From Lepidodermella squamata (Eukaryota > Animalia > Gastrotricha): DNA of 64,000 bases. Below the pieces are notes generated by a model, which searched no databases, was not told where the DNA came from, and saw nothing but the letters and a program-made list of their open reading frames with translations. Every line of letters starts with the position of its first letter. Within the stretch, counting starts at the first letter, position 1. The translations under genes and the position numbers were made by a program. Of this stretch, positions 22,950 to 47,087 are shown piece after piece. The DNA lies in the NCBI GenBank assembly GCA_047495785.1, contig JBLDXI010000040.1, forward strand, positions 124,001-188,000, in the 5' to 3' direction.

Positions 22950-24204
22950 CTGTGTACTGGGATCGGGAATTTATTATTGTAATTGCCGCGATTGTATATT
23001 AAATTTTCGAAATAATCATAATTTGTGTCAGTTCTTAATCATTAATTGGCGTTTATTGGTCATATTTTGCTGCTAGCTAGGCGCGGTAATGGAGATTGAT
23101 TTTATGTGACTTTTACGAGTGATATCCGGCTTCGAAATTTTTCGAACCATCAAACCGGGCAGGCATCGAAATATTTAAACACCTGACAGTATAAATCGAT
23201 TAACTTGTAAGGTCAAGGCGACGGATAGGAATAACAAATTATGTATAGATAGAGCCCTAGAGGAGGCCAGTTTTTCCGAGAAACTAGCCGTATCGTGGGC
23301 TCTATTGTACATAGTACTCGGGAGGAAGCTGTTACCCTCTTCGTTTTACGTGGGTAAATACCCCCTAAAAATGCATAAAATCACATACGTAGAGCGAAAA
23401 TAGAAAATTCATCTATAAAGCTCAACATTCGCATTCCGGTTATTCTGAACCGCTTTGCGCGTCGCTAAAAGCACAATTTTTCGTAGTTTCTTAGCCGATA
23501 TCTGTGTCTGAAGCATAAAAAATTAGCGAATGTTTGAAAATCAATCGCTTTACCTCATCTGAAAGCTTTCAATTATTTTGATGATTTTCAAAAATGCACT
23601 TTCACTGCAACTCTGGAACAGAAATTAAGATGACTAGAGGACTTTCCTCGTGTTTACCAGCTATTGACCCTAAACAAGCATTATCAATTTGGGGGTTTCA
23701 ACCTTGGTTTCAACGGATGCAGCACAGTTTTCCAATAGTTTTTCTCGCTCCGCTCGAAACAATTCAAGTTCGCTACACTCGGCTCATCTCGCTTTCTCGA
23801 TCAGAAACCTTGCCCCGCCGTGAAACACGAGCAAAGCGAGCATCACGGGGCAATTTCAGTCGCTGAAATGCATTGCTCGCTTCGCTCGTGTCTATTAAAA
23901 AAATCCAAAGTACTATGTTTACTATGTAGCATCCTCTGGAGTACTATGAAACCCGCGTAAACCATGCGTAAACAGACATGAGACGTACTATAGGACACCG
24001 CGGCTTCGAAGCTCTTGTTTCATGGAACATTTCATGGCCCGGAATGTGAGTATCGCGGTTGTGAATACGAAAGAAATTTTAGGCTTTATCAATTAGGATT
24101 GAAATCCTGCCAATAATGGCTCTATGAGAGCATCCAGGGTTGCGTAGAATATTAGGTTTGGAAATGATGAGCACGCATCAATGTTATTTTATTCTCCGAA
24201 ATGT

Positions 24205-24455
24205 CGTTTGTGTTCTGCAGTAATGTAGCTTAACCATGCTATACGCACATTGGAAAATAAATTTTCTTAATTTGTCGAATTTAGCCTCGAAACTGGTATC
24301 AAAATGACCGTCTTGATGCGAGGATAAAGAATATGTAAAATTTGTGGCATTTCGAGCGTCCAGTGCCACGTTAAAGCTGTTTGAGCGGTTTTTCGTCCGC
24401 GTACTGTTATTATTATTAGTGTGTGTGCAAATGCATATGCATATATGATGGCCGC
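24205..24455 (+). repeat. Left TIR of giant element
   Basis: CGTTTGTGTTCTGCAGTAATGTAGCTTAACCATGCTATACGCACAT... Confidence 0.9.
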
Positions 24456-25195
24456 ATGTAGCATCTTTTCCCGCCGTTGTTCTTTTTTCTTATTAATGCT
24501 TTGATATCTTTTAGGCTTGGGGTTAAGGTTCGGTATCTCAAAGGGTATCTCAAAAATATTTATGTCTTAGTTTTTTCTGAAATCCGCCCATAAATAACTT
24601 CTGCTGATAAAAATAAATGTTTCGTAATCTCAACAACCGTTTGACAAGTGCAACCGATGTGCAATAAAAACGACATTACTTTTATACACCTCGCCTTCTC
24701 CCATCAATCAATTCATAACTAAAAGTTATTGCCATGTACTAGCCCTCGGAGAGTTTGTTGTGAAGCGAACCTAGCTGTTGCAGCAACGCCGAATGAACTC
24801 AACACATCATTTTAATGCGCAGCTATGAGCCGAGGGAGAATCAAAGTCGCAAAATTGCATCGTTTTCAGAAAGGTGTCAATAGCAAGATTTTTGCATAAA
24901 ATAAAATTATCATTCAGCGATAATAAAACAAAACTCAGGGTTTAAAACGATTCTTTTCTTACAAATAATTATTTATTACAATAATAATAATATGCAAATG
25001 CAAAAGAGACACTTTCGGACTAGAAATTTCGCGTAAAAAGAGACACTACAAAATTACAAAAAGATAGTGGATAAATAGGTTTTTTTTACGAAAATGAAGA
25101 TTGATTGATTGATTGTTGATGTCATCGCTCATTTCGATAGGTTTTTTGCTAGCTGTTTGCAACCACTGGCTATTAATCCAGCCGCAATCAACATT

Positions 25196-25791
25196 TTAGT
25201 CAGTTGCCATATAGCCAGACCCTTGATGTTGGAATAAAAACAATCACAATTTGAAAATCAAACACGTTAACTTTAACTTACTTGAGCGGCATCGGAGTAG
25301 CCAGATGCAAATCGCTAAGATGACAAGAGCAAATAGAACCCAAAGAATGACCGAATAAGCGTCGGTAATATTATTATCCTGGTGGGACAGAGAAAAATGG
25401 TTAAACTTCGTGATTAAACTCAGGTACATTCAGAACAAACCGGTAAAATCTGTGAGCAATCTTTCGAAATGTTCAGCACGCTGTTCGTTAGATAGGACAC
25501 TGACAGGGTCTGTGCGTTTGTTGGCGGGGTCTTTGTTTTGTCTGTTGCTGTTGTGGAAGTTGTTGATGTTGTTGTTGTTATTGTTGTCGATTCAATGAGA
25601 CTGCGACATACTCTGCAACTGCCAGACTTGGCGCACCATATGATATTGGCATCTGTAAAATCATTGCTGTAAGATTTTTTTAGCAAAAACTGGCAAAAAA
25701 ACTTGCCAGTGGGCTCAAGACAAGGCGGTGATCCCGATATCGTCTCCAACATAAAAACCGCCAAAATCCAACTATTAGTAAGATTAATCAT
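25196..25791 (-). CDS. Cargo: small type I membrane protein (signal peptide, Cys domain, Thr-rich stalk, TM)
   Basis: Exons 25791-25441, 25378-25282 and 25221-25196 splice in phase. TM is VILWVLFALVILAICIWLL. Confidence 0.65.
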
Positions 25792-26060
25792 CGTTAAACT
25801 TTACTATTCAATAGAAAATTATTTGTATCATACTAAATTCAGCAGTAAACAGGCAACAGAGAAACTCAGCAAACGTTAGCAGCTGAAATCCTACGTAAAT
25901 TATGAGAACGGTCAAAGCAATGATGCTCATTTGAACAGTAAAAACTGGCAACTGACTGTCTGTTACCCAAATCACGAAGTCAGCCCTAAACCACTAGCGG
26001 GGCTTTGATGGAAGTTGTTTGATTGATGTCAAGTTTGTGCGAAATTTGCTGAAAACTCCA

Positions 26061-26384
26061 CTTGTCACAAGTAGAAAACAATCGGGCCAGTTTGTTACGA
26101 GTAGAAAACAGATGTGCCTATTTGTTACGAGTAGAAAACAAATATTGGAGTCGCAGTTTAACACTTGACAGGATGCTCCAAGAAGCCCCGTTTACGATGA
26201 CTTGGTCTCGACAGTAAGAGAGCCTCCCGGGCCTTCGTGATGACAACTTTTCAAAGGATTCAAGATTGCGCGCGAGTGGACACTAATGGTTTAAAGTATA
26301 AGTATTTGTTACGAGTAGAAAACAAATAGGTCAACTTGTTACGAGTAGAAAACAGATGCATCAACTTGTTATCAGTCCTAAACA
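26061..26384. repeat. Two clusters of a 20-bp motif TTTGTTACGAGTAGAAAACA at 30-bp period
   Basis: Copies at 26061, 26091, 26121, 26305, 26335 and a degenerate one at 26365. Confidence 0.85.
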
Positions 26385-27286: not shown

Positions 27287-30200
27287 ATGGCTGAATTTTT
27301 CCGTGGTGTTTTGCCGCCGGCCGTTGGATCGCGTGCTCTCGCCAACGATGGCGTGGTCAACGACGGTGTGGCCATCAGCGGCCATCAGCGGCAATCAGAC
27401 GATTTGGCCATCAGCGGTGTGGTCATCAGCAGGGAACAGCACAACTCCAACAGCACAACGCTTGTAGGTTTCATTTACATTTTTTTATTTTTGTTACCAT
27501 TTCGAATGCTCTTGATCATGCATTAAACAACTTTTGATACTGTTTCCTTCAATTGAGCCTTTTCCATGTAACCGGTGTGAAGTCAACCGTGACGAACCGC
27601 CGCTCAGTTCGCCGAGGTTCTACGCATCACCGGCAACATAGCGCGGTTCCACTCGACTTACGTCTCTACGGTTCACCGACGTGTAAGCGCGATTCCTGTA
27701 GCCGACACAGTAGCTGATGTTGCGCATGACCGATCTTCATCATCCGGAACCAACACGGCCTCGAAAAACAACCCATTCTGATAGTATATAAACCCTGTTA
27801 ATAATGTTGTCAGACACTTGATAGACACACAAGTTAGGTAGTTGGTTATAGTACAATAAAACCTGTCAGTTGTTGGAGTCCGCCGTCTCTTGCCTGGACC
27901 ATTCGAACCCGTTACAATTTGGTGTCAGAAGTGGCTCTAGCCGAGAGCGGCGGACCCCATGACCAAGCAGGAACCTGTCGACCCGGAGGAGTGTAGGACT
28001 GCAGATAAAACCGCGAAAGCTCGACGACAAAGGGCCAAATGGCAAGTACATCCGAAAGATGTAGCCACAGCGAACGACAAGGTGCCGACGACATTGACAA
28101 TCTGCAAGGCAACGAGAATCAGCGGATACTGGCAAGTGTCGAATTATTGATCGGACTGGGACGGATCTGACGGATCGTGCTGGGCGAAACAGTCAAGGCA
28201 GCCTGGCAAGGATAGGATCGAAGACCGAACAGTCGTGGTCAGACCTTTTGCGAACAACGTCGCTAAAGAGACGGATGGAATGGTGCAAGGCCTACAATGT
28301 ACAACTGGGTACTGTAGCGTTGAATGTCCACACTTAGTGATTAGTACGCGTAGAGCGTAGACGTATTGTGAGTTATGGAAATACTGGCTAACCCTAGCAC
28401 TGGTACCGGGTGCATGCGGCTGTTTTGTTTTGGAGGAAACACATGATGGTTTCAGACCGGTAACCGACTTCAACCCTAACCCCAGCCTTAAGACGGTACG
28501 GAGGAGAGGATGAGCTTCATTACACGGATGCAACTTCTGGTTGTCACCGATAATATTGAACGGAGACGAGGGCGTGTTGTCCAGCAGCAGTTGTCGTATG
28601 TATGGTTGAGGAATGAAGTTTATTATGGAGTATGCCCTTCTGGAAAGGAAGGAGGAAGAGACTGTCGCAATATAGTGAAGCTAACGACCGGACGGTACCG
28701 TAGGCACGCGCCGCATTTACGTCGGGAATCAAAAGTTCGGCCGAACCTTCTTCACCTGGAGCCTGACGTACAGAATGCGGGCGACATGACTGACAATTGA
28801 GAGCGATGTGATACTATGATTGTACAATCCTGGAGACGCATAGTCTGGAGATTTCCCAGGTGACGACCTGGAAGGGAGCGGTAGTTCGCAAGGATTTTTG
28901 ACTGGTTGATATGGTAAGAAAACCCCCGAAAGGCGGCTCGCTCCGTTTGTTGGCTGCTGGATGATGGATGGCGCCAATTATAATGTTGTTTGAACACCCC
29001 TCGAAGTCGCCAATTGCAGTCTTCTTGGACTGGTTGAACCGCGTTGATCATGACGCCGCTGAACCTTGCTGGGCGATTGTAGCCGTGAAAGATGCTGCGA
29101 TGTAGCATGAATGGAATCGGAGTATCACTAAAGTCGCAACGTCGATTAAGGAAGTGACGAACCCTGTAACCAGAAGCCGAGGTGATGATGATAATGGAAG
29201 CGGCGAGTGGCGAGTTATGAGCCCTTTGACTTAGTTTACCTTCTCTATGACACATATTTCTGGAGAGAACTACACGATCGACTCTGACGCCATGTGTTCG
29301 AGGAATAGCCCTGGTGTGTCGAACTGGCCGAGTGCCGAGTGCACGTTCTCGTCATTAGTGATAGTTACTCTTCTGATTCAGTCTTGTGTTGTGCGTTATA
29401 AACCTTCTAAGCTTGTGTCTGCGCCTATCTTTTATTACCTTGGAGAAAAGAGGGATGGGAATATCATGTCAGGACGGGGTGGAGTGACCATTAACAACTA
29501 CCGTAGCAAATTAACAAGTCGAATAATAACAATTGTGCCGAGCCGTAGTAGACTTTATGCACGCCGATTATTACTAACATTATGAACTTTGTTGCTGGTA
29601 GTATAGTTGCATAGTAATAGTGTTGTAGTAGTGTTGTTTAGAGCTATACTGTTACGATTCCTGTAAATTAAACAGATACGCCTGCTCTAATATGTGATGA
29701 AGTGAAGCAACTCACGGCCAAGATGCAACTCAAATCTTCCGACGGATACTACGCCGCATGTAAACAGAGCTGTGTCCTTCAAAGGAAAAAGCTGCACAAC
29801 GTTTCCGGCCACGCCGTAGATTCGACGATGACGACTCATCGGCAACCACCGTTACAGTGGCAGTTGCAGTATCTTTTACTACGGGGCGGACATTGACTTC
29901 AACCTCGGCGTCGACCAGTGTAGCAGCCTCGACGGTTTCCGCGGCCATTGCGCGGGCACCTACGTCAGGAACTGTTTCGGACACCGGCTGCGGCATGCGG
30001 GTAGTTTGAGGATGCATCGATTCCGGTGGATCACTCCTCAGCCACCGTACATACGACGCGGTTATCGCAAGATCGCGGGCATGTCCGCTATGACGGAACA
30101 GAAATGATTCATAGGTGCGAAGTGCTGCTGCCACTAGCTCCTCGACGCCAGCACGGGTCGTTAGGTCGTAAGTTTGGCCAGAGATGTCACTAGATGCTGG

Positions 30201-32489
30201 GCTGATGGCACCCGAGCGTTGTTCATCGACGTTGGACATACTGGGCGTAGTTGTATTGCTTGAAGTTATGGATCTGCCTCCGACATGGTCATTTTATATG
30301 GTAGTCAGCGAACGATACGTGGTCACGATTCAATGACTCTGTGGATAACTGTTTTCATTGACACCCGTAGTCATAGGTTAAACGGGGAGGAATTGTAACC
30401 GGTGTGAAGTCAACCGTGACGAACCGCCGCTCAGTTCGCCGAGGTTCTACGCATCACCGGCAACATAGCGCGGTTCCACTCGACTTACGTCTCTACGGTT
30501 CACCGACGTGTAAGCGCGATTCCTGTAGCCGACACAGTAGCTGATGTTGCGCATGACCGATCTTCATCATCCGGAACCAACACGGCCTCGAAAAACAACC
30601 CATTCTGATAGTATATAAACCCTGTTAATAATGTTGTCAGACACTTGATAGACACACAAGTTAGGTAGTTGGTTATAGTACAATAAAACCTGTCAGTTGT
30701 TGGAGTCCGCCGTCTCTTGCCTGGACCATTCGAACCCGTTACATCCATTCATCTGTTACATAATACTGTAAAGCCATGAATTTCTTGTTTAGCGAATTTA
30801 ATTTCTGCGTGACCGATTTTTACACCCATTTGCAAAAAGTCCTCGTAGGACATATGATTTTACATTATTTGTATTGTATTTATTTGGAGTTTATTTGTAT
30901 TTTCAGGAGCATCAGTATTTCTACATAGCGATAATCGCCGTCACCAGCGTAACCGGCGCTATCGTAATTTGCTGCTGTTGCCTGTACATATTTACAAAAA
31001 CCAGAGCTCTACGTGCTCGAATCGTCGGTAAGCTGTAATTAATTTGCTTATTTTTTTTTATTCATGCTTTCTACTTCAGGCTGCCTCCGAGAGCGCGCCT
31101 TTGTTAGCGTTGACATTGGTTTGTTTGTTTTAGTTGCTAGATTCTTGTAATATTTTTTTCAACTCTAGAAACGATTCGCGGCGCGGTTTCGCCGTTGCTT
31201 GATAGTGTAGCAACGCCGTTTCGGCGTGCGTTCGCTCACCTGAAAGACTTAAAAGATGCTGGGCAATCTGTTGCTGGTGCCGGCTCACCGGATGAAAACA
31301 TTGGTAAAAGCTGAAACCCGAAATCGTAATTATCATGATTATTCGTTTTTGCAGAATCTTGCGAATTTAAGGAGCCTGATCATCCTCAAGTGCCAGGTTT
31401 TGATTTGATTATCACACATTTCATTTGGCTAACATTGTTTTACCTAGGATCTTCTGAGATTGGGCCAACTCCTCGTGTCCCCGTGAAGCATGCTCGGGTC
31501 TGCGATGCCGATGCGAATGCCGCTGAACTCCGCGCCGCTAATGCCATGCGGCTCTTTCACATGGCGGAAGAACAGCGTGCCCGCCAAGAGGCGGCTACGC
31601 ATGAAGCTGTACATTACGCTCGCGCGGCAGAGGCCCGTGCGGAGGTTGCCAATGCGCGAGCTGCGGCTGCCGAAGCACGGGTCGCTGCTGCAGAGGCGCA
31701 AGTTGCCGAGGCGATGGGCCTTCTACATGCCATCGAAAATGCGATTACCGCTGAGCAGCAGCGGCTGGCTCAGTTACATGCTCAGTTACATCCGCCCAAT
31801 TTCCATCTAACGCCTGGTTAGTTAACAATATTTTACACCCTGTTTTTATAATTTATATATTTTTACAGGAGAGGAGGTTTCGGTCGATACAAATTTGTTC
31901 TCTACCCCAACGGCTCGCTCGCTCACTGGAAACAACGGTATCAACGATTTGTTATACTTGTTAATTTTGTTTTAAAGTCTGAATTGGTTTTATAGACCCT
32001 ACTAATGCTGCGCTGCCACCATCTTCATCTTCATCATCTTCAACGTCATCTTTACCGGAATGGCGACCCGACTCGTCAGGTTCAGAGTCTGATCATGCTC
32101 CGGCTGCTTCGACTGCTTCGACTGCTCCGACTGGTTCGACTGCTCCGGCTGGTTCGACTGCTCCGGCTGGTTCGACTGCTCCGGCTGGTTCGACTGCTCC
32201 GGCTGGTTCGACTGCTCCGGCTGGTTCGACTGCTCCAGCTGGTTCGACTGCTCCGGCTGGTTCGACTGCTCCGGCTGGTTCGACTGCTCCGGCTGGTTCG
32301 ACTGCTCCGACCGACCAGAAAAACATGCAGGACGCTACAGCCGTTCGTTGCTACTGCAAAACCGGCTGTTTAGCCCAGTGCGGCTGCCGCAAAAATAACC
32401 GGCGTTGTAGCCCGGCGTGCTTCTGCGTAAGGTGGTTTAACTGTCAAAACACTGTGACAGTTAAACCACCTTGCGCAGAGGGCAATTAG
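27287..32489 (+). CDS. Cargo: 7-exon, ~436 aa protein with TM + Cys cluster, Ala/Glu coiled coil, (APAGST)n and C-terminal CXC-like Cys domain
   Basis: Exons 27287-27463, 30907-31027, 31080-31118, 31355-31396, 31448-31816, 31869-31937 and 31996-32489 are all GT-AG and phase-consistent. It ends with [34 protein letters not shown]. Confidence 0.7.
27567..30743 (+). mobile_element. Non-autonomous LTR retrotransposon (Gypsy-like), identical 350-bp LTRs, TSD TCCA
   Basis: LTRs 27567-27916 and 30394-30743 (TGT...ACA). PBS TGGTGTCAGAAGTGG is tRNA-Leu-type and the PPT is AAACGGGGAGGAA. No recognisable gag/pol. Confidence 0.92.
29730..30239 (-). CDS. Antisense 169-aa ORF inside the LTR element
   Basis: ATG-initiated and the longest ORF in the element. 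TATAAAA lies ~55 bp upstream on the minus strand. Basic C-terminus. Confidence 0.35.
   Translation of the reverse strand: MSNVDEQRSGAISPASSDISGQTYDLTTRAGVEELVAAALRTYESFLFRHSGHARDLAITASYVRWLRSDPPESMHPQTTRMPQPVSETVPDVGARAMAAETVEAATLVDAEVEVNVRPVVKDTATATVTVVADESSSSNLRRGRKRCAAFSFEGHSSVYMRRSIRRKI
32097..32310 (+). repeat. 18-bp coding minisatellite (GCTCCGGCTGGTTCGACT, ~10-11 units)
   Basis: Directly visible. It reads APAGST in the spliced frame. Confidence 0.9.
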
Positions 32490-32819
32490 ATTGGTTTGAT
32501 CTTTGCTCTCAGATCGCGTGCTCTTCAGTCATAGAACCATTAGATTTGTCAATTAAATTGCTGCGACATTCATAAAGTTGAGCATGCTGCTCAGTTTCAA
32601 ATATTGATTTGCTCCTCGATCTTATTTTTGATTGTAGATTTTCGATTTTTTTGAACGATCATCTTCTTCTTTCGTGCCAGCCTTATTTCTTATTTTTCGA
32701 TGGTTTTAACTCTTGATCATTTGTTACTCGCGCCTGAAAAACTATTGTTTTTAACCGGTTTCGACTCTTACATACCGTGATGCGGATAAATAAATACTAC
32801 AAAATATAACTGCTCAAAT

Positions 32820-32965
32820 GAGACGTGGCAAGCGATTTCGGCCCTATCTCTATCTTCGCAGTCATTTGAAAATTGGGTGTTGCGCAATAATGATTATGCG
32901 TCAGCTGTTGCTTTTTCAAATGCCTGTGAAGATAGAGATAGGGCCGAAATCGCTTGCCACGTCTC
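32820..32965. mobile_element. 146-bp foldback MITE, GAG...CTC, 4-bp TSD AAAT (Sola-like)
   Basis: 38-bp perfect arms extending to ~53 bp, with AAAT on both flanks. Confidence 0.8.
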
Positions 32966-34663: not shown

Positions 34664-34754
34664 TTCGATTCAAGTAGTATTAATCATCCCTAGAAACTAA
34701 GAAGATGTGACAGGCGCAAAGAAGCCGTGCGCAAAAAGCATTAGCAAAAAAATC

Positions 34755-35897: not shown

Positions 35898-36119
35898 CTT
35901 CGACCCATCAATTCATTTTTAGAAGCTTTTTAATCTTGAAGTTTATAATTTCTCTTTCAAAATGAATATCAAAATCTTTCAAGTTATGAATGTAAAATTA
36001 CATTTTACCAGATTTTTATTCTCTAATAAGGGCCTTGACAGAACAAAAGCTTCCTTTGTCAATCATCCACTTTTGGCGCGCTTCGTCTTGCGTTCATTTT
36101 TTCGACTCCTTGTTGCAAA

Positions 36120-37794
36120 ATGAATGCTACGACATATTATCTGATATTAATTATCGCCATCTATGCTCATGTCGATGGAAAAATTGAAAAACGCACGGTG
36201 AAACTATCTCCTGTTTTGGAGAACCCTCTTGCTGATGCGCCAGATATCGACTGGGAAAATGTGACGGATGGGTTTTTTACCGGGCCAGTAAATACCGAGT
36301 GTGAGACAGTAGCTTACATTTGGGGTAAGTATTTGGATTCATTTTCGAACATTGATCGCTAAAAAACATGTTTTTCTCTAAAGAGGGGCATTACTATCTT
36401 GGAAAACTTATGGCTGTAAAAACGGGCAAAGATAAACGAGACTGTGGAGATAAGGTGAGCCCTTTAACCTGACTTAAACATCATTGGGTTCGTTTTCATG
36501 ACTCAGATCATCAAAGATATGAAGGAGGTTGTCAAAAAAACATTTCCTCTCACTGCAGATGATTTGGTGAGCAAATTATTTTAGTGAACATGAGTTAACT
36601 CAAGTGAATTTTATTGTTAGAAATCCTACACTTTCCGGATTCTTGTATGTATCAATCCCTCTTATGAAACTGCCTGCAAAGAGGGAGCTGATATTTTGGC
36701 TTGTATGAAGGTTATTTAATTGCTTAATCTTTCAATTTGATGAATTTCTATTAAAAGGCCTTTGACGAGAAGAATACTGGAAACTTACTCCCTGGATTGG
36801 TATGTAATAAGCATTTTTCCAGAGCAGTTTGCTCATTTGATTTATTCTCAGATATCCATAGCTTACTTTATCGACTTCGCTGAGGACACAAGCTGCATGC
36901 TGCGTAGCTATTCGAAGGTGTGGCTTACTCAAACGCTATGGGATCTCAGTGTTTCCGTTCCGGTGAGAGAAATGTTCACAAACTGGATACCAAGTTTAGT
37001 CAGGGCCATTTCTCTGGCTTATACCCCTATTCAATCCACGCTTGAATATTTTGCGAAAAAATCCACCCTGGTCCGGGAAGTTTTAGCTCAGGTACGTTTC
37101 TGGCAAACGATGATCATAATTTTGACTTTAATTGTCTTAGATTTCAATTTTTATCATCAGAAGTCCGAATTTTTCAGCCTATCAGTGCTATTTCTACATC
37201 GTGGTAGCTTTGTATCTATTATACCAATATTACTACTCGGGATCAGATTCTATGCGAAACAGGCTACTAATGCAACTAATGCTACTGGCGGTCTGCGGTG
37301 CCTTGGAATTAGTTGTAACAAGCTATGCAACCGAGATAAAGATTTATGACACGGTCATAGTAACCCAATTTGTCGCTCTATCGCTGCGTTATTTATATGT
37401 GAGCGAGCTATATCTTAACCGACCTCTGATGTGGTATTTATCTCTCATTTACATCTTATCTTTTTTGGCTGTTGCGCGCATGATTGAGAAATACATGAAT
37501 AGAGAAGATGGTGGTGGTGGTGGTGTGACAAACGATTCAGACCGTGAGGTTATTGCTACTAATAAAATTGAGCCCATAGTTAATTTGAAAACTACTGAAA
37601 CAAGTAGCAGACTAGCCTCCGATCCATCTTCGTCTGTCTTGCGATCTGGAAGAAGAATCGTCCATAGCGAAAGCAGTCGTGTCATTGCCGAAGAAAAACG
37701 TGACGTGGGCAACAATGAATCGTCATCTAAGAGCGAAGAAAGTCGTTCAAGTATTATTCAGCCTTTGATCAATCGCTTTCGGCCATTTCGATAG
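36120..37794 (+). CDS. Cargo: 7-exon polytopic membrane protein of unknown function
   Basis: Signal peptide MNATTYYLILIIAIYAHVDG and six short phase-consistent GT-AG introns. ~4 hydrophobic segments lie in the last exon (from 37141), followed by a Ser/charged tail. Confidence 0.7.
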
Positions 37795-38167
37795 TATAGA
37801 TCTTGCTACTTTAACCAGCAACAAGGAACTCTTTAGCAAGGAACTCTAGCATGTTGTAGGTAACCTAAGGAAATCTCCGCCTCTGGCTTTTTATTGATAA
37901 TTGATATTGATATTTGATATTGCAAAATATTGCGTTTTATTAGTAGTCCTTTAACTCTTGTGCGCGAATCTAGCCAATTAATTATTATTTTGTGGTTATC
38001 ATCTTCATTTTTCCTTTTTGCACGCCTTCTAAGAATGTAAATTCACTGTCAATTATAATAAAATACAAGTGTGATCTATTATTTGATAATTATAGCTACC
38101 CACAACTAAGAAATAAATGTTTACTTTTCTAAATTTCTCTCACATTTTAGTCAGTTTTATTTATCGT

Positions 38168-39672
38168 ATGGCATACCGCAAATTTCACGCAGAGTTTAAT
38201 GTTCTAACGATAATTTGGAGCTCAGCAATTCTATCTGAGGCATTCTGTTTAACAACCAACAACTGCGAAAATTTCGAAGAAATTAGTGTTCCGCCGTGGG
38301 CCCTCGTTGAGGATGGGGCATACCAGATTTCCTTTTCAGACTATTCGCCGCCGATCCCTTCTCAAGTGTGCTTAACTAAGTCGGAATTATGGCAACTTAA
38401 TTATTTATTTTGGATAAACAAGGTAAGGTTTTGGTTTGCCTTTTGGATATTTAATGAAAAACTTTATGCCAGTACCGAATAATACCAGCATCAATACAAG
38501 ATGTGGCTAAATTGGAGATTTATACTGGCAACGATTGCTCTGAAAAGCTCGCTGCTAGATGCTGTGCAGTAACTGCAAACCGTCGTTCGCCCGGCATTCT
38601 TCAGATTATGTCACTATTTCTACCAAGCTTATTTGATGCATCAGACGAGGACGATAAAGATGCCTTCGAGACGGCGCTTGTGTCGGCCTTTGATTACTAC
38701 AGCATTGCTATATGCCCCTTGAATTCGACTGTCGATCTGCAATTGGCTGAAAGTTATTTTGATTTTAATAATTTCATTGTCACGCTAACAGGTGTTCTAA
38801 TGGTTGTAGCATCGAAATGGCTAACTGAAACGAATCTAGCTTATTATAGTTTTTGTTCGATGAGCGGAAGTTTAGCGGGGATAGCTGCTGCGTTTTATTT
38901 TATATCACAATTGTACAATACTAAAAGGCCTGTTGCCTATGTGTTGCTGTCATTTATCGCTGGATCATATGCCTCTTTTGAATACCTAAATTATACGATT
39001 GATAATGCACATAATATTTTATACGCCTTAATATTTTTGTGTTCTTGCTCTGCGTTTGTTATTTCTTGGATAAACGGTCCTTTGGTCTCGAGTAGGCCGA
39101 AAATGGCGATAAACGTTGTTTTGATCATAACGGGCTTTTTTTTAATATATTACGGAACCTCATTCAAGCCACAACATACAGCGTTATTTTTCGTGCCAAG
39201 TTTTACCTTTTTAGTTTATTCCAGCTTAAAGAATACAATTTATATGAGCCTAGCCCTAATAACTGGAAAAAAATCCGTGGAGACTGGCCCTGGAGTTGCC
39301 GTAGTTGGGAATGGTCTTGACGATGCGATAGTTGGCGCTAGCCCCAAATCTAAAGCCCCTACAGCTGTAGAGACTGAACAAGTTCCCAGCGTGGTAGCTG
39401 TAGGTCTTGCAGGAGAAGGCAGAATAGATACGCCGCCTACCAGACTCATTGCTTTTCCTTATATTTCTGAAGCAGAATTTGAGTATCAAAGTATACAATA
39501 TACCGCTGAACAGCTAACTGCCTTGCGCAATTTTGCTACCGCTAATATGGCAACCGTAGTTGCTAGGATAACCCATCTTCGTCAATTTATGGCATTTCTA
39601 ACCGGAGTTAATTTATATGTAGTTAGACAGGAAGCCCAGCCGTCCGCCCAGGCAAATGATGTTGTGCAATGA
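38168..39672 (+). CDS. Cargo: divergent NEMP (TMEM194)-like nuclear envelope integral membrane protein
   Basis: Exons 38168-38422 and 38473-39672. NEMP-like motifs are GVLMVVASKWLTETNLAYYS..GSLAG, NGPL..SR..INVVL..TG..LIYYG, ISEAEFEYQSIQYTAEQLTALRNF and RITHLRQFMAFLTG. Confidence 0.75.
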
Positions 39673-40204
39673 CGAACATTATTATAATCTCACATGAATA
39701 TGATTTATAATGCCATTATGATGAAGGTCCCGCAATATTTTTTGCATGCAATCTTTGGACTTCCTCAATGTTCTTGCGTTACCTATAAAACCGAAAACAA
39801 CTACAGTGCAAGTCGTCTAAATCGGACTCGGGTCGCGCTCGGGTCGCTCGGGTCGCTCGGGTTGCGAATTCCAGACTCCCAAAATCCGTCAGGTTTATAC
39901 CACCAGACCGGTTGAGAATGAAGTCCACACTTTTGGACTCAAAAACTTCCGGTTTAGACAACTTTCACTGTATATTATAAATATTATACCGATCTCATCT
40001 CACAATAAAATTATATTGTATAAGCTAGAAAGTATTTTTTATAAAAGTTTTCTTATATTTCTTATTGCTTCTTTGTTTATTTCTCCGTTTTCCGTACATT
40101 AACCAACAATTAAACCGTTAAACAACTCCGTTAAAAAGTGTGATGTGCATTTCAGCTATTTAAATTTATTCTAACTTTAGTCGATTAATTTTTTGAGAAT
40201 ATTT

Positions 40205-40543
40205 ATGGCCACAACGACTTGTCGGGAGGCAACGATTGAGGAGATTGAACGTTGCCGTTTATTCAATCTCGATTGTTCGGGTCTATGCCCCGCCTTTAAC
40301 CCGACAACGTCGCCAGCCAACAATGTGCCGCCTGGCCTTTCAACCCCGATGTTGATTGGTCTAATATGCGGGGGGGTAGTGCTTTTGTTAGCAGTCGTGG
40401 CCGCGACAGGGGCTGTAATCGTCATTTGTCGGCGCAGGCGTCGTTATGCCCCTATCGATCAACATCATCAATCTACAATTCAATTGTGCTTGTTCGCGTC
40501 GAACGAACAAGGCGCTGCCGATGAGAATGCTGTAACAGCCTGA
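40205..40543 (+). CDS. Cargo: small single-pass protein family member 1
   Basis: C..E.ERCRL..DC..C N-terminus, P/T stalk, TM, RRRRRY and LCLFASNE tail. Confidence 0.7.
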   Translation: MATTTCREATIEEIERCRLFNLDCSGLCPAFNPTTSPANNVPPGLSTPMLIGLICGGVVLLLAVVAATGAVIVICRRRRRYAPIDQHHQSTIQLCLFASNEQGAADENAVTA

Positions 40544-40760
40544 TCAAAACATCGACTTTGTTTTTACCTAGTTTTTTATGGCCTTGCCTGTTACTTGCCT
40601 GTAACTTAACAATAATTTTTCGAAGAATTGATTGTTCCTTAATTCGTGCAAAAAATGATATATATTATTGAAATATTATTATAAATATTATTAAACCATA
40701 AATAATTGAATTATTTTCGTTTTTTTAGATATTACATTCAATCTCGTATTACATTCTCAA

Positions 40761-40971
40761 ATGCCTTGCGTGTCATTTAGTTTTGACGACCTGGTAAAAT
40801 GCCGCCTTGAATTGTGAGACAACTGTGATAATTTCTGCAATGGGGCGACTCCCATCACAGAGCCTGGTGTTTCCACCACGTCCGGCGCAGTAACCTCGCC
40901 TAGCCTGACTTCTAGCCTGGTTTCTACCACAACACCCACCACACCCGCTGCCGATACGCCGAAAACTGACG
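40761..40971 (+). pseudogene. Cargo: family member 2, pseudogene of 42932-43282
   Basis: MPCVSFSFDDLVKCRLEL* has an early TGA. Similarity continues to DTPKTD, then stops and the TM is lost. Confidence 0.7.
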
Positions 40972-41141
40972 AAAAATCTATTGGTCGTTTTTGTCGTTTC
41001 AACTTCCACTGCTACTTCCCCTGCAATTGTAAACTTTGGTTACCTGAGTCAACAGAGATGAAATCTCTCTCTCTCTCTCGTTTTTATCGAAATCATGAGC
41101 ATGAAATCACGAAGTTCATGTTCAAGTCATGTTCAACTCCT

Positions 41142-41380
41142 GGGAGTTCCTGTTCTACTAGTCAAATTGAAAATCGCACAGAGCGTAAAATGCGAGCTTG
41201 GGTGCAATCACCGCGCTTCATCGAATCAAGAAGGGAGTTCCTGTTCTAGTCAAATTGATAGTCACAGAGAGCGTAAAATGCGAGCTTGGGTTCAATCACC
41301 ACGCTTCATCGAATCAAGAAGAGAGTTCCTGTTCAAGTCTGACTGATAGTCACACATGCCGTAAAAGGCGAGCTTGGTTT
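41142..41380. repeat. ~88-91 bp tandem repeat, ~2.7 copies
   Basis: GAGTTCCTGTTC...GCGTAAAATGCGAGCTTGGG...CATCGAATCAAGAA units start at ~41142, 41233 and 41321. Confidence 0.8.
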
Positions 41381-42298
41381 TTGTATCAGTATTAGTCTGA
41401 TTTAGTCTTCCTCATTGTGTTGGAAAAGAAAAAAAATTAGTCGGTATAATCGAATTCAGAAACTCAGATGTACTCGATGTGTTAGATAAACGGAATTTCC
41501 ATGGCCAATCGGAGACATTTCCGCAATCCGATATACTACAGGATTTGTGCCCAATTTTCAGATTTCTTCACCGGGGCCAGTGATGCGCGAAAACATTAGC
41601 GGCTGATGTGGAGAAAACGTCTTTTCTTTGCGCTTATAAAGCCCCGCTTGAATTCCTCAACTGCTTCGACAACTGTCGCGTTTCATGACAACTGTCATGT
41701 GGAGAACCAGGCCAGACTATTCCAAGTCCTGACTTCGGCCGGACTTCGGAATTTTTAGTAGTCCAGTCAGTAGCTTCGTCCAAAACGCGTCTGCATATTA
41801 CGCGTCAGCTTCGTCCTTTTCGTCCGGCTACGAGAAGTTCAGTAGTTCAGCTTGCCAGGAGTTTGCCAAGGTTTCGATTCTCTAAACGAAAAATCGATTC
41901 CATGTGACAAGCATCACAGGTCTGGATATGCTTTTGTATGCAATTTTGATGGTAGAATTGTTTCCGCATTTTTGAAAATGGAATAAGTTCGCGCAGTTGA
42001 TTTATAACATGCGAGAACAACGGCCGTGAATACACATACACTTCTCAAAGATTGAAATAGCGGACGGAACCCAGCTCAATTTGGAGCTTAAGAATTTATA
42101 GAAAAATAGCTTCTATAGAAAAATGTAAGGGCCGAAAAGTGTGCACTTGGAGAATGCGAGGGACTAGAAAATCGAATGGACTGAGTGATCGTGATTTACG
42201 AAAAATTGAAATTGCTTGCATATTTAAATTTATCGAATCGAATCAAATTTGTGTTAAATAATTGCATTCATTAAATTTTAGTGTTTAATTTTTCTAAA

Positions 42299-42628
42299 AT
42301 GACCTGCATTCCACCGTCCGCTGAAGCCTACGAGAGGTGTCGATTGTTGCATGTCGACTGCAACATTTGTCCGCCATCAACAACCACCTCGGTTACAACC
42401 ACTTCCTCAAACCCCTTGCCGCCTTCTCCAGCTGAGACGGGATTGTCAAAGCTGGAAATTGGTCTTCTTTCAGCGGGGATCGTCACAGCAGTGATTGTTA
42501 TCATTATATCCATTGTTGCTATTATCTTTATTCGCCGTCGAAGGCGTTATTCTCGACTCGAAAGCCTTCCGCTTTGCTTGTTCGCCTCTAACGAAGAGGC
42601 CGATGGAAATGCCGAAATTACGGCATAA
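42299..42628 (+). CDS. Cargo: small single-pass protein family member 3
   Basis: ERCRLLHVDCNIC, T-rich stalk, TM, RRRRRY and LCLFASNE. Paralog of 40205. Confidence 0.72.
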   Translation: MTCIPPSAEAYERCRLLHVDCNICPPSTTTSVTTTSSNPLPPSPAETGLSKLEIGLLSAGIVTAVIVIIISIVAIIFIRRRRRYSRLESLPLCLFASNEEADGNAEITA

Positions 42629-42931
42629 TATTCTTAGTTTATTACTTTGTACTTGCCATATTATCAAGTCATATTACTTGACATAATATCTTGCCATATT
42701 TCTTTGTCTTGCCATTATATTATGTTGTATCTTGCCATATAATATAGTATTGCAATAATATTATAATCTTGCCATATTACTTGCCATCTGGCAAATATGG
42801 CAAATACTTGCCATATTATTTGCCGCCGTATATAATGTGTATAATGTTAATTTTATTATTTCATTCGGTATTAAATGATCTATCGATAAACTTTCTGCCT
42901 GTTTCCTTTTAGAAATTAAAAAATTATTATT

Positions 42932-43282
42932 ATGGCCGATTGTGTCCCGTTTAGCGAGGATGCTGTAATAAAATGCCGCCTTGAATTGAGTGCCAGCAGT
43001 TGTGTATTCTGCGACACGACTTCTACGACTGGCACCTCCATTACTTCTTCTACCACGCACGCTAGCGATACGCCGAAAACTGACGTTTTGATTACAGTTT
43101 CAGTTGTCCTATCGGTGATCGCGATAGTTGGTGTCGCTATTCTGGGATTCAAGTTCCAGAAGGTGATACGCTGGCTTCAAACTGTAATTAGCCGAAGTCG
43201 GCGAGGTTTGGAACGGCTGCATATATACCGAGTTGACGGGCGTATAATTGACACGATCGAGCTGCCTGAAGATAGCTTGTAG
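42932..43282 (+). CDS. Cargo: small single-pass protein family member 4
   Basis: CVPFSEDAVIKCRLEL..SCVFC, T-rich stalk and TM VLITVSVVLSVIAIVGVAILG. Confidence 0.72.
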   Translation: MADCVPFSEDAVIKCRLELSASSCVFCDTTSTTGTSITSSTTHASDTPKTDVLITVSVVLSVIAIVGVAILGFKFQKVIRWLQTVISRSRRGLERLHIYRVDGRIIDTIELPEDSL

Positions 43283-43411
43283 AATTTTTTTTAATTATTC
43301 TGCTCATATCTGCATAATATTTCTTGATCATTCGATTCATTCAATGATACATCTTGGTTATTTCAAATATACTAGCAAAATCATTAAAATATTAGCGAGT
43401 TACTGATTATT

Positions 43412-46094
43412 ATGAGCCTTCCATCAACATCGGCTGCGACTAATGTCGCCGATATGGAAATTCCAGTGTTCCCCAATGATAAATTGAAGAAACCGATTCG
43501 GCGAGTAAAATCGGCTTGGGTCGATGAGGAAAAGCGGATGAGAAATTCTGGAGAATCGTACGTGAGAAGGGAAATTGTTGCCAAAGATCGTGATACTGGC
43601 GTGCTGCGAAAGAAGCGAAAGTTATCTGTCGTTCGGAAACGCGAGGGCAAGCGGCTGTTGAACTGCTGCAAAGAAAAGCGATGTTGGGAAAAATACACGG
43701 ACGTGAAAATAGCAGAACTGAGTCAACAGTTTAGGTCGACTGGGTCCATCTTTGACCAACGTCAGTTTGTTGGGAGATTTGTCTCAAAGGATTTTGTCAA
43801 GTTTCGAAGTAGAATTACCTACACACTACCCGCAATTTATGCTACGGAGAAATTTCGAGGGAAAGCGGCAAAAATTCAGCGGATTACTGTTTGTCGCAGG
43901 TTTTTCGAGTCTGCCTTGGATGTTACGAATCGCTTTGTGTCTTACACTTTGGAGAACAAGCTTAGTCCCGACCAGTTGACTGTTTATCCGGACTTTCGGC
44001 GTGCGAAGAAAGAAGGGGGCAGAAATACCTTGAACGAGTTGACGAGAAATTCTGTTATCAATTTTGTGAAGCCTCGTTTAAAAGCGTAAATTTTGATAAT
44101 CTCTGGTGTAAAATGCGTCAATAAGTCGATTGTGTTTTCTGACATTGCAGCAAATTAAGCCATTACCGAAGAAAGTATTCTAAGCGCTTTTATGTGTCTA
44201 CGAACATCACTATCGGAAGCCTTTACCGAGATTGGGTTTCTTATATTGAATCTGAACCTCTGCTTGGCATCCGGCGATGCAGCTATGTCTCTTTCCGTCA
44301 ACTTTTCCGCACGCATTTCAGGTATATTTTACGTAACTAATATCTCTTTGTTGTGTACTCAGCTTGATATTATTATTATTATAAAGGTCAGTCTCATTCC
44401 AAGAACCACGAAATGACAGATGCAAAGTGAGCACAAGGCAAAAATAGATATTATTAGCGAGCTGTCAACTGTCATTTAAATTACAGGTATGCGCTCGTTG
44501 GAATTTCATGACAGAGGCGCAGAAAAATCAGAACCGTGCCAAGCACCAACAGCACTTGGATGAGAAGGACGCTAGCCGCGCTTTTCGGCGTTTGCGTCGC
44601 GAAAGAGCCGAAATGTCGCGACAAGCAGATTTTGCTGGGCGGAAAAGCGCCATCATTGAGGTGAAAACGGCCGAAATGCGATTTATGAAAAGATAGCCTT
44701 GTTGCCGCTTTGTTCAAGGTTGACGCACAATCCAAATTACGCACACCCTGCTGCGCTTTTCCCTACAAGCGAAAGCTCATAACGACCAATTTTACGATTT
44801 TCGACCTCACTGAACGGACAACTTTTAATTATTTGTTTGAAGAGTTTAACGGTACCTTGAAAAAAAATATTATATTATTCATGCAGAATCACCCCTCATC
44901 CGCTTTTTCCGTTTCAGGGTCCTTGGGCGCGGCCGAAATTGGATCGATTCTCAACCACTACGTCTTGAATCATCTCGACAACGATATTGAAGAACTGACT
45001 ATCGTCTCAGATTCGACAGTTGGAGCTGGGAAAAATCGGTAATGAATTTAAGTGAACACTATTTTTTTTCTAAATCAATATACTCGCTGCGTTTTTTTCA
45101 TTTTTCATAGCTTCATCCCTAACGCAATTTACCACTTGTTGAGAGAGGTCAATAGCCGGCGTGTTAGGGCTGGCCAAGCTCGGCTGAAATTTATTGATTG
45201 GATGTTTCTAGTTCCTGGTAAGTGGCGTTGAATTTTTTCAAATTTTGAGGCTCAGACGCTTTTTTCTGTTTCAGGTCGCACGCAGGTGAATTTGATCAAA
45301 TTTATGGGTGAAACACGTTTTTTTAACTGTTTTCTATAGATGAATATAGATAATTCGCATTTTTTAATTGAGAGATCGCGCCGAAGATATGGTTCAGTTA
45401 CCGATCCATTTGAATGGCGGCAAATTATTAAAAGTGCTCGGCGACAAGGAACCGAGAAGGAAAAGTTCCGCGTCGTTGAATTTACTTGGGAGGACTTCAA
45501 AGACTTTCGCAGGAAGCCAAATTATTGGACGACTTTGCAAAACAGCAGCAAATTTCGCGTAACCGAGTACCAATTTTATCGATTCAAGATAAACATAGGA
45601 CAGCATGAACTTTGGGCCCGCAAAAGCTATGTCAATATTGCGACTGATGGCAACAACCCGGGCGCTCTCACCCCAGAACAGCGATTATTGATTGATTCCG
45701 ATGAAGACGAGAAGATTCGCTTCGATGTGCATCTTACACCTAAGAAAAATGAAGGTCCCTTTGCTTATAACAATGGTGAGTTTAGCTTTAGTCTTATCGT
45801 AAGGTAATTTATAATTATGGTGTTATCACAGCCCAACCGGAACCCGCATACACTGGACCACGAAACCTTACGTTCGATAAAAAGATGGATTTGCTGTCGT
45901 GGATTGCTGATGGTGTCACTCCACCTAGAATGCTCGAGTACATCAAGGCGTTGCCATGTGACATTTCTTCAGCCGAAAAGCGGCAGGCTTATGAAAATCG
46001 ACTAGCCTTGATTCAAGAAAAATATAAAGATAACGAATGGACCGCTGATGATGAAGATATGGCAGACGAAGAGCCGCTTGTTGACAGGCTCTAA
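43412..46094 (+). CDS. Sola1-type DDD transposase, 10 exons, ~709 aa
   Basis: Exons 43412-44085, 44151-44321, 44387-44426, 44487-44660, 44719-44851, 44918-45038, 45111-45217, 45275-45285, 45340-45775 and 45832-46094. Motifs are SHYRR, F.EPRNDRCKVC..H, VDAQ..RTP..YKRKL..NFTI, AEIGSIL, SDSTVGAGKN, FLVPGRTQMNIDNSH..IE and KKMDL. Confidence 0.88.
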
Positions 46095-46551
46095 ACGCTT
46101 ATTTTAACCACATTGTTTATAATATTATATGATTTTTTCGTGGTGGGAACCCTCTTCTTTTATCTATTATTTTATCTTAGCTCCTTTGTGCCACAAAAAA
46201 CAACTGTCATCTTGTTAGCGATTGCTTCTTTTATTTATTCGTGACGATCATCATAACAAAGAATTAATAAATCGAGTGTTTTGAGCTAAAAAATACCACT
46301 TTTTGCCGCTCCGAAATACCTCTTAATTGAACAGCTCGAAAAGAAGCGAAGCAAAAAAGAAATGGAGTAACTTCAGCAATGGTGATCGGCCTTTTGAGTA
46401 ATTGAAACATCATGAACATTGCTTTTGGTCATAGGAGACGTCCTGGTTTGCAAGAAACAAAATTACTTTGGAAGGTAAAAACAGAAGAATTACGTGAAAG
46501 CAAAAATCTCAATAAATAAACAATGAGCGCGAAATTGGCGCTTGCGAAAGA

Positions 46552-46801
46552 GGCCATTATTTGTATATGCGCATACTACATACTACTAATAATGATAGGA
46601 GTACTTCGGCTAAAAACTCGTTTCAACTCTTTTAACTTTGCATTGAACTGTCAAAATGCCACAAGTTATACATATTCTCGCTCATCTCATCAAGGCGGTC
46701 ATTTTGATACTGGTTTCGAGGCAAAATTCGTCAAATTAAGAAAATTTATTTCTTTATGTGCGTATAGCATGGTTAAGCTACATTACTGCAGAACACAAAC
46801 G
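46552..46801 (-). repeat. Right TIR of giant element
   Basis: ...ATGTGCGTATAGCATGGTTAAGCTACATTACTGCAGAACACAAACG|ATGT. Confidence 0.9.
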
Positions 46802-47087
46802 ATGTATCTTGGTGTCATAATAGCGCACAAAAAAACGAGGTCACGGCATGAGATGAAAAATGGCTGATTTTTTCGAAAAATCGCACAATACGCAAAATCA
46901 ACAACAACAACGACAAAAAGTCTTTGGAACATTCGAAACTGCTCCAATTCGCAGATCTGAGCAATAAAAAACACAGAGAAGAAAAAATTAAATTTTTTCC
47001 CCGAAAAGAAATAAATCGCATTTTTTCAACAGATAATAATTCGAGAAATAATTATAGTAATAAATTTACTAATTAATTTTTTGTGCA

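Follow-up and report, generated by a model that had tools for sequence, protein, structure and literature searches.

Natural cut-and-paste transposons of eukaryotes are thought to be small, the host sequence that they capture is usually fragmentary, and their efficiency has been reported to be lower once the cargo exceeds a few kb (PMC6431247). The closest described group for the element presented here is Sola1 which, as described by Bao et al. 2009 (cited by PMC3845634 and PMC4455052), is characterised by a 4-bp TSD of the AWWT/AWDT type, by TIRs and by a single transposase with three aspartates, all of which are features shared by the present element; the lack of a Pfam transposase domain, shared as well, is reported for Sola in PMC5751038. 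The differences lie in size, 22.6 kb here versus 2.3-2.8 kb for autonomous copies of insects (PMC3845634) and a mean of 5.4 kb for curated bivalve Sola1 (PMC10294476), and in the presence of about nine additional genes. The initial annotation had taken known Sola elements to be only a few kb long, and this agrees both with the bivalve mean and with the inverted-repeat-bounded elements of three relatives (4.2-4.5 kb); the single copy examined here is about five times as large as its known relatives.

It had also been stated that no example of this kind has been described. The statement stands for Sola, since no report of a giant cargo-bearing member was found in the literature searched, but not for the general phenomenon, which is known from CACTA elements, Pack-MULEs and Teratorn. 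The En/Spm (CACTA) elements of the red alga Chondrus crispus measure 16-20 kb and contain 4-5 ORFs (PMC6431247). Like the present element, they are cut-and-paste transposons of several-fold the usual size with extra complete ORFs inside their TIRs, whereas they belong to a different superfamily of the DDE type, generate a 3-bp duplication and are multi-copy; here one copy was seen, and the extra genes are more numerous. Pack-MULEs and other Pack-type elements (PMC6431247) also hold host-derived coding sequence inside cut-and-paste TIRs, but they are non-autonomous, mostly 1-2 kb long and loaded with gene fragments, in contrast to the transposase gene and the full-length open genes of the element described here. 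Teratorn of teleosts, which combines a piggyBac-like element with a herpesvirus (PMC5822658, PMC6431247), is similar in having a DDD-type engine and TIRs that surround many foreign genes in one very large block; its TIRs, however, enclose the genome of a virus, about 180 kb long, while no viral gene was detected in the scanned ORFs of our element.

Large mobile units with accessory genes are represented as well by the cargo-carrying Mavericks/Polintons of nematodes (bioRxiv 10.1101/2022.07.12.499685) and by the Starships of fungi (PMC12134995). The polymerase, rve, capsid, ATPase and tyrosine recombinase of these systems were not found among the scanned ORFs, and both the TSD length and the ends are different. 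Bacterial composite transposons (PMC6431247), finally, resemble the present element in that a single transposase recognises the ends on either side of the passengers, although they are built of two complete insertion sequences and not, as here, of one transposase gene and two arms.

Boundaries of the insertion and its empty sites

The element occupies positions 24205-46801 (22,597 bp) of the window, by which we mean the whole 64-kb stretch of DNA that was analysed. Its termini and the sites used to delimit it are as follows.

6970-6985, + strand: paralogous empty site in array unit 1, matches to the left and right flanks of the element contiguous
15684-15699, + strand: paralogous empty site in array unit 2, matches to the left and right flanks of the element contiguous
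24201-24204, no strand: left TSD copy, ATGT; a single 4-bp AATT is present at the same position of the empty paralogous sites
24205-24453, + strand: left TIR, perfect over 46 nt, 92/100 over the first 100 nt, decaying over about 250 nt
46552-46801, - strand: right TIR, inverted-repeat match to the left arm
46802-46805, no strand: right TSD copy, ATGT, identical to the left copy

The two TIRs of about 250 nt, the left one starting at 24205 and the right one ending at 46801, are identical in their outermost 46 nt, and the similarity decays inward to 84% over 190 nt and 80.6% over 252 nt. Alignment of both arms therefore bears out the ~250-bp repeats with perfect 46-bp tips that had been proposed for this locus. 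The terminal 31-mer has only two sites in the 64 kb, which correspond to both TIR tips (0 expected, 100 shuffles). Inner terminal repeats and a second transposase were also sought across the window and none were found, leaving two arms and one transposase locus.

The host flanks are part of a tandem array of three units, the element being located in unit 3. In units 1 and 2 the counterparts of the two flanks adjoin each other: the left-flank alignment runs as far as 24201, corresponding to 15689 in unit 2 and 6975 in unit 1, and the right-flank alignment starts at 46808, corresponding to 15695 and 6981, respectively. The length of the empty site equals that of the filled site minus one ATGT copy in both paralogues. 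Since both paralogous sites are uninterrupted and agree in length after the removal of one ATGT, everything between 24205 and 46801 is an insertion, a single one with a true 4-bp duplication. Both the exact 4-bp TSD and the single TIR-bounded unit of the initial annotation are thereby confirmed. Four of the six positions at or adjoining the target site differ from both paralogues. The element would have entered an intergenic spacer of unit 3, where two host genes point towards each other, at a time after the duplication of the array.

Comparison of the window with itself showed no sequence shared between the interior of the element and the array units. In addition, no paralogues of the cargo genes were found in the flanks within the window; hence the cargo was not copied from adjoining DNA. 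No Rfam RNA families were detected in the window.

Transposase gene and superfamily assignment

Near the right end of the element lies the gene which is the candidate for its mobilisation.

43412-46094, + strand: transposase gene, 10 exons, nine GT-AG introns of 54-72 nt, unbroken product of 709 aa

The protein family was reached through the 117-aa catalytic exon, which gave one weak match (E 9e-4) against representative proteins and was followed by a second search. Relatives align over all nine exon junctions of the splice model (best E 9e-32), with P0029 covering residues 155-413, P0008 residues 268-503 and P0012 residues 392-663 of the 709 aa. The DDD triad is located at residues 355, 429 and 481, and aspartate occupies these columns in 15/15, 17/18 and 16/16 relatives, respectively; we infer that D355, D429 and D481 play the catalytic role. 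Within the family the protein is a distant member of about 25-33% identity, which retains the dominant residue in 21 of the 39 strongly conserved columns.

The relatives themselves carry "hypothetical" names and, as to Pfam, DUF7869 only. An RNase H-like fold was seen in one of them, the Foldseek matches to integrase cores being at the level of the fold only (TM 0.3-0.5). The search for an IS-type relative in NCBIfam, that for relatives of exon 1 in the metagenome scan and that for mentions of DUF7869 in the literature were all negative. The single intact-looking transposase reported earlier near the right end is thus recovered as an open model of 10 exons with a DDD triad, and the element can be described as autonomous-looking.

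Most probably the element belongs to the Sola1 group, as is suggested by the length of the TSD, the AWDT-type target and the DDD triad. The target AWDT/AWWT is given as a Sola1 hallmark in PMC3845634, which cites Bao et al. 2009. ATGT fits AWDT, and AATT of the paralogous empty sites fits AWWT, a single insertion being weak evidence on target preference. At its tip the TIR is unlike the insect Sola1 TIR given in PMC3845634 save for a short common stretch; the relatives in L001, L005 and L006 have different termini, too, and no clean duplications were readable at the ends of their elements, these ends being too decayed or too ambiguous. Pfam is without a Sola transposase domain (PMC5751038).

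Several other classes were considered and rejected. A target of TTAA, as used by piggyBac and Kolobok, is at variance with a duplication of ATGT and an empty site of AATT. Ginger and other integrase-type DNA transposons also generate 4-bp duplications, and they possess a retroviral-type integrase core (Pfam rve) and a DDE triad. No Pfam rve was found in the pieces of the window or in the relatives, in which the third acidic residue is D (16/16). Assignment to the Maverick/Polinton class is contradicted by the absence of PolB and packaging ATPase, along with rve and capsid, from the scanned ORFs and by a duplication of 4 bp instead of 6 bp, and assignment to the Starships, which are fungal and have a tyrosine-recombinase "captain" gene at one end, by the lack of a recombinase domain in the same ORFs, the mobilising gene being a putative RNase H-like DDD transposase. 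A Pack-type element would not be expected to have an open 709-aa transposase of its own and a full-length 501-aa gene among its cargo, while a composite transposon does not fit one transposase locus with two TIR arms only.

Cargo genes and nested mobile elements

The region between the TIR arms contains, besides the transposase gene, the following genes, ORFs and repeats.

25247-25791, - strand: small membrane-protein gene; signal-like N-terminus, Cys motif, Thr-rich stalk, one TM, probably two exons; ORFs only
26062-26384, + strand: five copies of a 19-nt motif, 30-nt spacing; no mirror counterpart at the right end
27567-30743, + strand: non-autonomous LTR element, 3177 bp; 350-bp LTRs 100% identical, TG..CA ends, TCCA duplication, PBS-like and purine-rich tracts
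31339-32486, + strand: low-complexity ORFs, uncertain as genes; Ala-rich coiled-coil-like, then an 18-nt tandem repeat coding for a Ser/Thr/Pro/Ala-rich tract
32814-32971, no strand: palindromic MITE-like element, 158 bp; 59-nt arms, 93% complementary
33858-34538, - strand: PHD-type ORF, 226 aa; C4HC3 Cys/His pattern at the C-terminus, Cys/His-rich N-terminal part
34755-35401, no strand: MITE-like element, 647 bp; 99-nt inverted arms, 8-bp duplication AAAAAATC, hAT-like by TSD length
36120-37794, + strand: multi-pass membrane-protein gene; signal-like start, open stretches of 201 and 217 codons
38117-39672, + strand: NEMP-like gene (nuclear envelope integral membrane protein family), 501 aa; exons 38117-38422 and 38473-39672, 50-nt GT-AG intron
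40193-40543, 40767-41246, 42281-42628 and 42932-43282, + strand: four tandem paralogous small single-pass membrane-protein genes; Cys motif, Thr/Ser-rich stalk, TM, basic stop-transfer

About nine ORFs/genes other than the transposase gene were claimed for this region and about nine are indeed present, several of them long and open and one recognisable as a NEMP homologue. The latter matches Pfam NEMP with an E value of 1.5e-13, above the gathering score, and includes an open stretch of 404 codons (chance expectation 1e-6). Further open stretches of 230, 217 and 201 codons occur in the cargo, where at most 0.06 stretches of at least 200 codons are expected. The small membrane-protein genes number five in the whole element (the one at 25247-25791 and the four at 40193-43282), and the four in tandem are paralogous, with 38% identity (E 5e-9). 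In the case of the PHD-type ORF, about 0.013 open stretches of at least this length are expected by chance; it has no Pfam match and no homologue in the protein searches. No Pfam match was obtained for the multi-pass membrane-protein gene either, and the idea that it is a paralogue of the NEMP-like gene was found to be unsupported, the likeness of its TM region to this neighbour being weak (E 0.054).

A generic best-spliced-ORF dynamic program was run over the element and dropped, since shuffled sequence reached scores of 621-891, level with most of the models. Because shuffled spliced ORFs score as high, the calling of cargo genes was confined to long unspliced open stretches, Pfam and paralogy. 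Judged from its sequence by these same features, namely the NEMP match, the long open stretches and the paralogous small membrane-protein genes, the cargo is not junk. The searches made returned no cargo homologues outside the NEMP-like gene. The word-index searches of proteins with the NEMP-like and PHD-type ORFs gave no match, the collections evidently being without the source genome or close relatives, and an exact look-up of ten ORFs of the window in the protein collection found 0.

All seven genes between 36120 and 46094 share one orientation and are separated by spacers of 129-1034 nt, the last cargo gene ending 129 nt upstream of the transposase start. Such tight, co-oriented packing looks more like that of a packed element than like random host DNA.

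At least 3.8 kb of the interior consists of nested transposable elements. No gag/pol Pfam domains were found in the ORFs of the LTR element. Subtraction of this element and of the larger MITE (22,597 - 3177 - 647) leaves 18,773 bp, in agreement with the ~18.8 kb calculated initially. Nested transposition on this scale shows that the element grows in place.

Origin of the cargo and its meaning

On balance, we favour the view that the insertion is a 22,597-bp autonomous-looking cut-and-paste transposon, probably of the Sola1 group, and that most of its cargo was already situated between the ends at the time of integration. The transposase would bind the inverted ends of about 250 bp, and integration would proceed through a 4-bp staggered cut at a site of the A-W-D-T type, giving rise to the duplication of ATGT. 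About 15 kb of non-transposase genes, which lie in the interval from the left end to the transposase gene, would have ridden along passively; three smaller mobile elements are also nested there. Because a single copy is known, no other having been found in the collections searched, joint movement of the cargo and the ends is suggested by parsimony. The same collections yielded no near relatives and no matching proteins, and the 24-nt TIR tip was absent from the metagenome scan. Several points count against the favoured view, namely the single copy, the growth in place by nested elements, the reported drop of transposition efficiency for cargo exceeding about 6 kb (PMC6431247), the distance of the transposase from the rest of its family and the differences at the target site.

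The gene-bearing DNA might instead have arrived after the ends. An ordinary element of about 4 kb, made up of the two ends and the transposase gene, would then have been inserted, and some 15 kb would have entered it later, to the left of the transposase gene, by means of another mobile element or break repair. That the LTR element, with its identical LTRs and its own TCCA, and the MITE, with its own 8-bp duplication, did enter later is in line with such growth, as is the fact that the inverted-repeat-bounded elements of the three relatives contain pieces of transposase only; the left 12 kb is, moreover, heterogeneous, with both strands used, low-complexity ORFs and repeats. Nevertheless, no pair of inverted or direct repeats brackets the cargo block as would be the case for a nested element, the right-hand 10 kb forms a tight co-oriented array with a 129-nt spacer to the transposase gene, and an insertion of 15 kb of non-TE DNA into so small a target, a few hundred bp long, would be improbable a priori. 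We regard this course of events as unlikely, though not negligible. We regard as decidedly improbable a one-off composite mobilisation, in which host genes at a donor locus lay by chance between an autonomous copy and an isolated left end from its own family, and the transposase carried them here in a single use of the outermost ends, so that the element would be an accident and not a cargo-bearing lineage. Such an origin would account for the presence of a single transposase, for a similarity between the arms that stops after just ~250 nt, with nothing in common between the neighbouring left interior and the right end, and for cargo genes that are spliced in the style of the host, with the same short introns; however, the window holds no remnants of inner ends from two elements, and the close packing of co-oriented genes beside the transposase gene fits long residence in the element better than a random stretch of host DNA.

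It is very hard to credit that two independent small elements flank a static host locus or that the assembly is chimeric. A repeated array is a setting in which assemblies can err, but otherwise only the unusual size speaks for an explanation of this sort. Both paralogous units are continuous from flank to flank exactly at the TIR tips, at one 4-bp site, the two TSD copies are identical, nothing in the interior matches the array units, and neither arm has a partner TIR of its own within the window, contrary to the two-element structure named at the outset as one finding that would refute a single unit.

A more far-reaching version of the favoured view, in which most of the cargo came in together with the ends, can be put forward tentatively, although we consider it doubtful: a lineage of the Sola1 type may stably hold a module of NEMP-like, multi-pass, small membrane and PHD-finger genes, co-directional with the transposase gene, and propagate as a unit of about 19 kb.

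The element is cleanly bounded, as verified by the empty sites, and has an open transposase gene and several complete spliced passengers; as such it would widen the range of size and cargo of a little-studied superfamily. It would also provide a concrete case for studying how whole genes, mostly of membrane and nuclear-envelope proteins, may be duplicated and relocated, or possibly carried across genomes, by a simple DDD engine. Should copies with the same gene order exist, the element would be a eukaryotic counterpart of the passenger-carrying transposons of bacteria, and if there are no such copies, it would still be a well-documented example of how gene-carrying vehicles start. If the reading as a lineage is true, the Sola group would have its first giant with cargo, which would also rank among the largest cut-and-paste elements of natural origin in eukaryotes that carry passenger genes in full.

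Terminal repeats and empty sites in the host array

The element, 22,597 bp in length, is bounded by terminal repeats in inverted orientation, whose left and right tips, read at both ends, lie at 24205 and 46801. The tips are identical over 46 nt and match at 92 of the terminal 100 positions, with the likeness gone by ~250 nt. The arms extend over 190 nt at 84% according to a repeat finder and over 252 nt at 80.6% identity according to BLASTN, in agreement with the ~250-bp repeats with a perfect 46-bp tip described in the initial annotation. The terminal 31-mer occurs only twice in the window, at the two element ends, with no occurrence expected from shuffles. The sequence ATGT abuts both tips on the outer side (24201-24204 and 46802-46805).

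The element lies in host DNA made up of three diverged, tandemly arrayed units; they share 72-94% identity, and indels of 0.6-1.7 kb set them apart. On its + strand, each unit contains a protein-kinase plus ankyrin-repeat gene, recognised by Pfam Pkinase and Ank hits, and on its - strand a gene for a small membrane protein that carries PPSY motifs.

Array units and empty sites (the latter from the flank alignment)
1-8581: unit 1, kinase-ankyrin gene and PPSY gene
6970-6985: empty site of unit 1
~10000-18436: unit 2, same gene pair
15684-15699: empty site of unit 2
~20066-24204 plus 46802-47829: unit 3, same gene pair, carrying the element

In the BLASTN alignment, the left flank is matched as far as 24201, the match ending at 15689 in unit 2 and at 6975 in unit 1. 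The match of the right flank starts at 46808, with its counterparts starting at 15695 (unit 2) and 6981 (unit 1). Both flanks are therefore contiguous in each paralogue, which rules out a static host locus between two unrelated elements. A single 4-bp AATT in units 1 and 2 is aligned with ATGT-[22.6 kb]-ATGT in unit 3, and the 16-nt stretch at the site is of equal length in all three units after one duplication copy is dropped. Hence, the exact 4-bp duplication noted initially is a real integration product and no chance match with odds of 1 in 256. From the ends, the duplication and the empty sites it follows that both tips were inserted together, in one event that postdates the duplication of the array.

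At the site and just right of it (24196-24204 / 46802-46812), 4 of 6 positions differ from both empty paralogues, a much higher rate than in the adjacent flank, which has diverged by 6-12%; the cause may be chance or a footprint left here by an earlier insertion. The PPSY gene of unit 2 (17861-18271, - strand) has a shorter open frame than those of units 1 and 3, and this paralogue is perhaps decaying. The right flank (48000-64000) has a G+C content of 34-35% and few long ORFs, the left flank and the element being at 40-45%.

Transposase and family assignment

Six-frame reading revealed transposase-like pieces in three + strand frames. A script listing frame-preserving GT-AG links between open pieces with homology support yielded a single coherent 10-exon chain (43412-46094, + strand). 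In all nine of its introns (54-72 nt), the donor context is ordinary and the acceptor context pyrimidine-rich. The spliced product comprises 709 aa with no internal stops. Relatives were reached via one weak exhaustive-search match, which seeded a word-index search returning 44 proteins, mostly metagenomic, plus 'hypothetical proteins' of Lottia gigantea and Popillia japonica; in many, Pfam DUF7869 is the sole domain. Fragments of these relatives align uninterrupted over every junction of the spliced model (P0029 to residues 155-413, P0008 to 268-503 with an E value of 9e-32, P0012 to 392-663), versus only about 1e-13 for the same relatives against unspliced DNA. All nine introns are thus supported, and the transposase reported as intact-looking near the right end indeed has an open 10-exon model.

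When the model is aligned with 18 relatives, D occurs in 15/15, 17/18 and 16/16 sequences at the positions of D355, D429 and D481, respectively. Of 39 strongly conserved columns, the window protein has the dominant residue in 21, and it is therefore a distant family member. The AlphaFold model of the relative P0008 (mean pLDDT 69) has a beta-beta-beta-alpha-beta-alpha-beta core, its top PDB matches being retroviral integrase cores and a reverse transcriptase RNase H domain (E ~3e-4, TM 0.3-0.5). This predicted structure indicates an RNase H-like fold and nothing beyond, in mild agreement with PMC3985635, where Sola stands next to RNase H1-type domains.

The families piggyBac and Kolobok are excluded because the 4-bp duplication is not TTAA. 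Ginger is argued against by the third acidic residue, D and not E, and by the absence of an rve domain from the scanned window pieces and relatives; Maverick and Starship were rejected, as the scanned ORFs hold no polymerase, capsid or recombinase domains. Sola1 is defined by grouping with curated Sola1 transposases. The element is likely to be a Sola1, an assignment based on the DDD triad, the 4-bp duplication and the AWDT/AWWT-type site, a target hallmark of Sola1 (PMC3845634).

Inverted-repeat-bounded elements at three loci of relatives measure ~4.46 kb (L001, Lottia), 4.19 kb (L005) and 4.54 kb (L006) and hold transposase pieces only. Autonomous insect Sola1 elements are 2.3-2.8 kb long (PMC3845634), and curated bivalve ones average 5.4 kb (PMC10294476). 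By these sizes, the window element is four to five times the norm. L005 (8784-12970) and L001 (7861-12319) have in common a short sub-terminal motif in several copies inside their ends; these look like transposase-binding repeats, and the motif was not seen at the ends of the window element. On L003, a metagenome contig of 5.6 kb, a hAT-type transposase gene (1809-4430; 873 aa, DUF4371 and Dimer_Tnp_hAT) and a DUF7869 transposase fragment are 1.1 kb apart, a transposon-rich neighbourhood of a eukaryote.

Genes and insertions between the ends

Features inside the element
25247-25791, - strand: small single-pass membrane-protein gene
27567-30743: LTR element, 350-bp LTRs 100% identical, TG..CA ends, TCCA on both sides
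31339-32486: low-complexity ORFs of doubtful gene status
33858-34538, - strand: PHD-type ORF, C4HC3 pattern at the C-terminal end, read from sequence
34755-35401: inverted-repeat element, 647 bp, 8-bp duplication
36120-37794: multi-pass membrane-protein gene, no family match
40193-43282: four small single-pass membrane-protein genes in tandem

At the stop-codon frequency of the element (0.051), 0.06 open stretches of at least 200 codons are expected; transposase aside, stretches of 404, 230, 217 and 201 codons were observed, plus some within the LTR element. The longest, joined to an upstream exon via a 50-nt GT-AG intron, encodes a 501-aa protein matching Pfam NEMP (E 1.5e-13). No match to the PHD-type ORF was found in Pfam or the protein databases searched. 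The five small membrane proteins each combine a Cys motif with a Thr/Ser-rich stalk and a basic stop-transfer sequence, and two are 38% identical to each other (E 5e-9). The flanks contain no paralogues of the cargo genes. Between 36120 and 46094, seven genes share the orientation of the transposase with spacers of 129-1034 nt, the final one, right before the transposase start, being 129 nt.

The identical LTRs point to a very recent insertion of the LTR element. Gag/pol domains could not be detected in it; its primer-binding-like and purine-rich tracts imply one strand, and its longest open stretches are on the other. This and the 647-bp element, both noted initially as nested, were confirmed; without them, 18,773 bp remain, as estimated initially (~18.8 kb). 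Three repeats were also observed: a 19-nt motif at 26062-26384, 1.9 kb inside the left end (five copies in two groups, 30-nt spacing; none expected by chance, no counterpart near the right end); a near-perfect 18-nt repeat at 32104-32309 (11 copies) coding for a low-complexity tract; and an 88-nt tandem repeat at 41142-41377 (2.6 copies), directly after the second small membrane-protein gene.

Probable movement of the loaded element

On balance, the loaded element seems to have moved as one unit, in which case ~15 kb of genes would already have lain between the ends at integration. This is suggested by the compact gene packing and by the lack of repeats bracketing the gene block, the mark of later nested arrival, none of which were found. 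The same observations speak against growth in place after insertion, which is unlikely. Against joint movement stand the at least three later insertions that the element has taken in, the single copy known and the large cargo, reported to depress transposition (PMC6431247). A one-off composite mobilisation is an improbable account. An artefact, or the independent small elements at the two ends considered in the initial annotation, is highly improbable: no inner terminal repeat and no second transposase fragment were found, which argues against two elements, as do the flanks contiguous in both empty paralogues.

No description of a giant or cargo-bearing Sola element was found in the literature searched, and Sola is absent from a review of giant transposons in eukaryotes. 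In general terms, the phenomenon has precedents in 16-20-kb CACTA families with 4-5 ORFs, Pack-MULEs, Teratorn, Mavericks with cargo and Starships (PMC6431247, PMC5822658, bioRxiv 10.1101/2022.07.12.499685, PMC12134995). The earlier statement that no described example is known thus holds for Sola within that literature, but not for large cargo-carrying elements generally. The element itself is well delimited and of interest to transposon specialists; it is a candidate for a propagating cargo vehicle.
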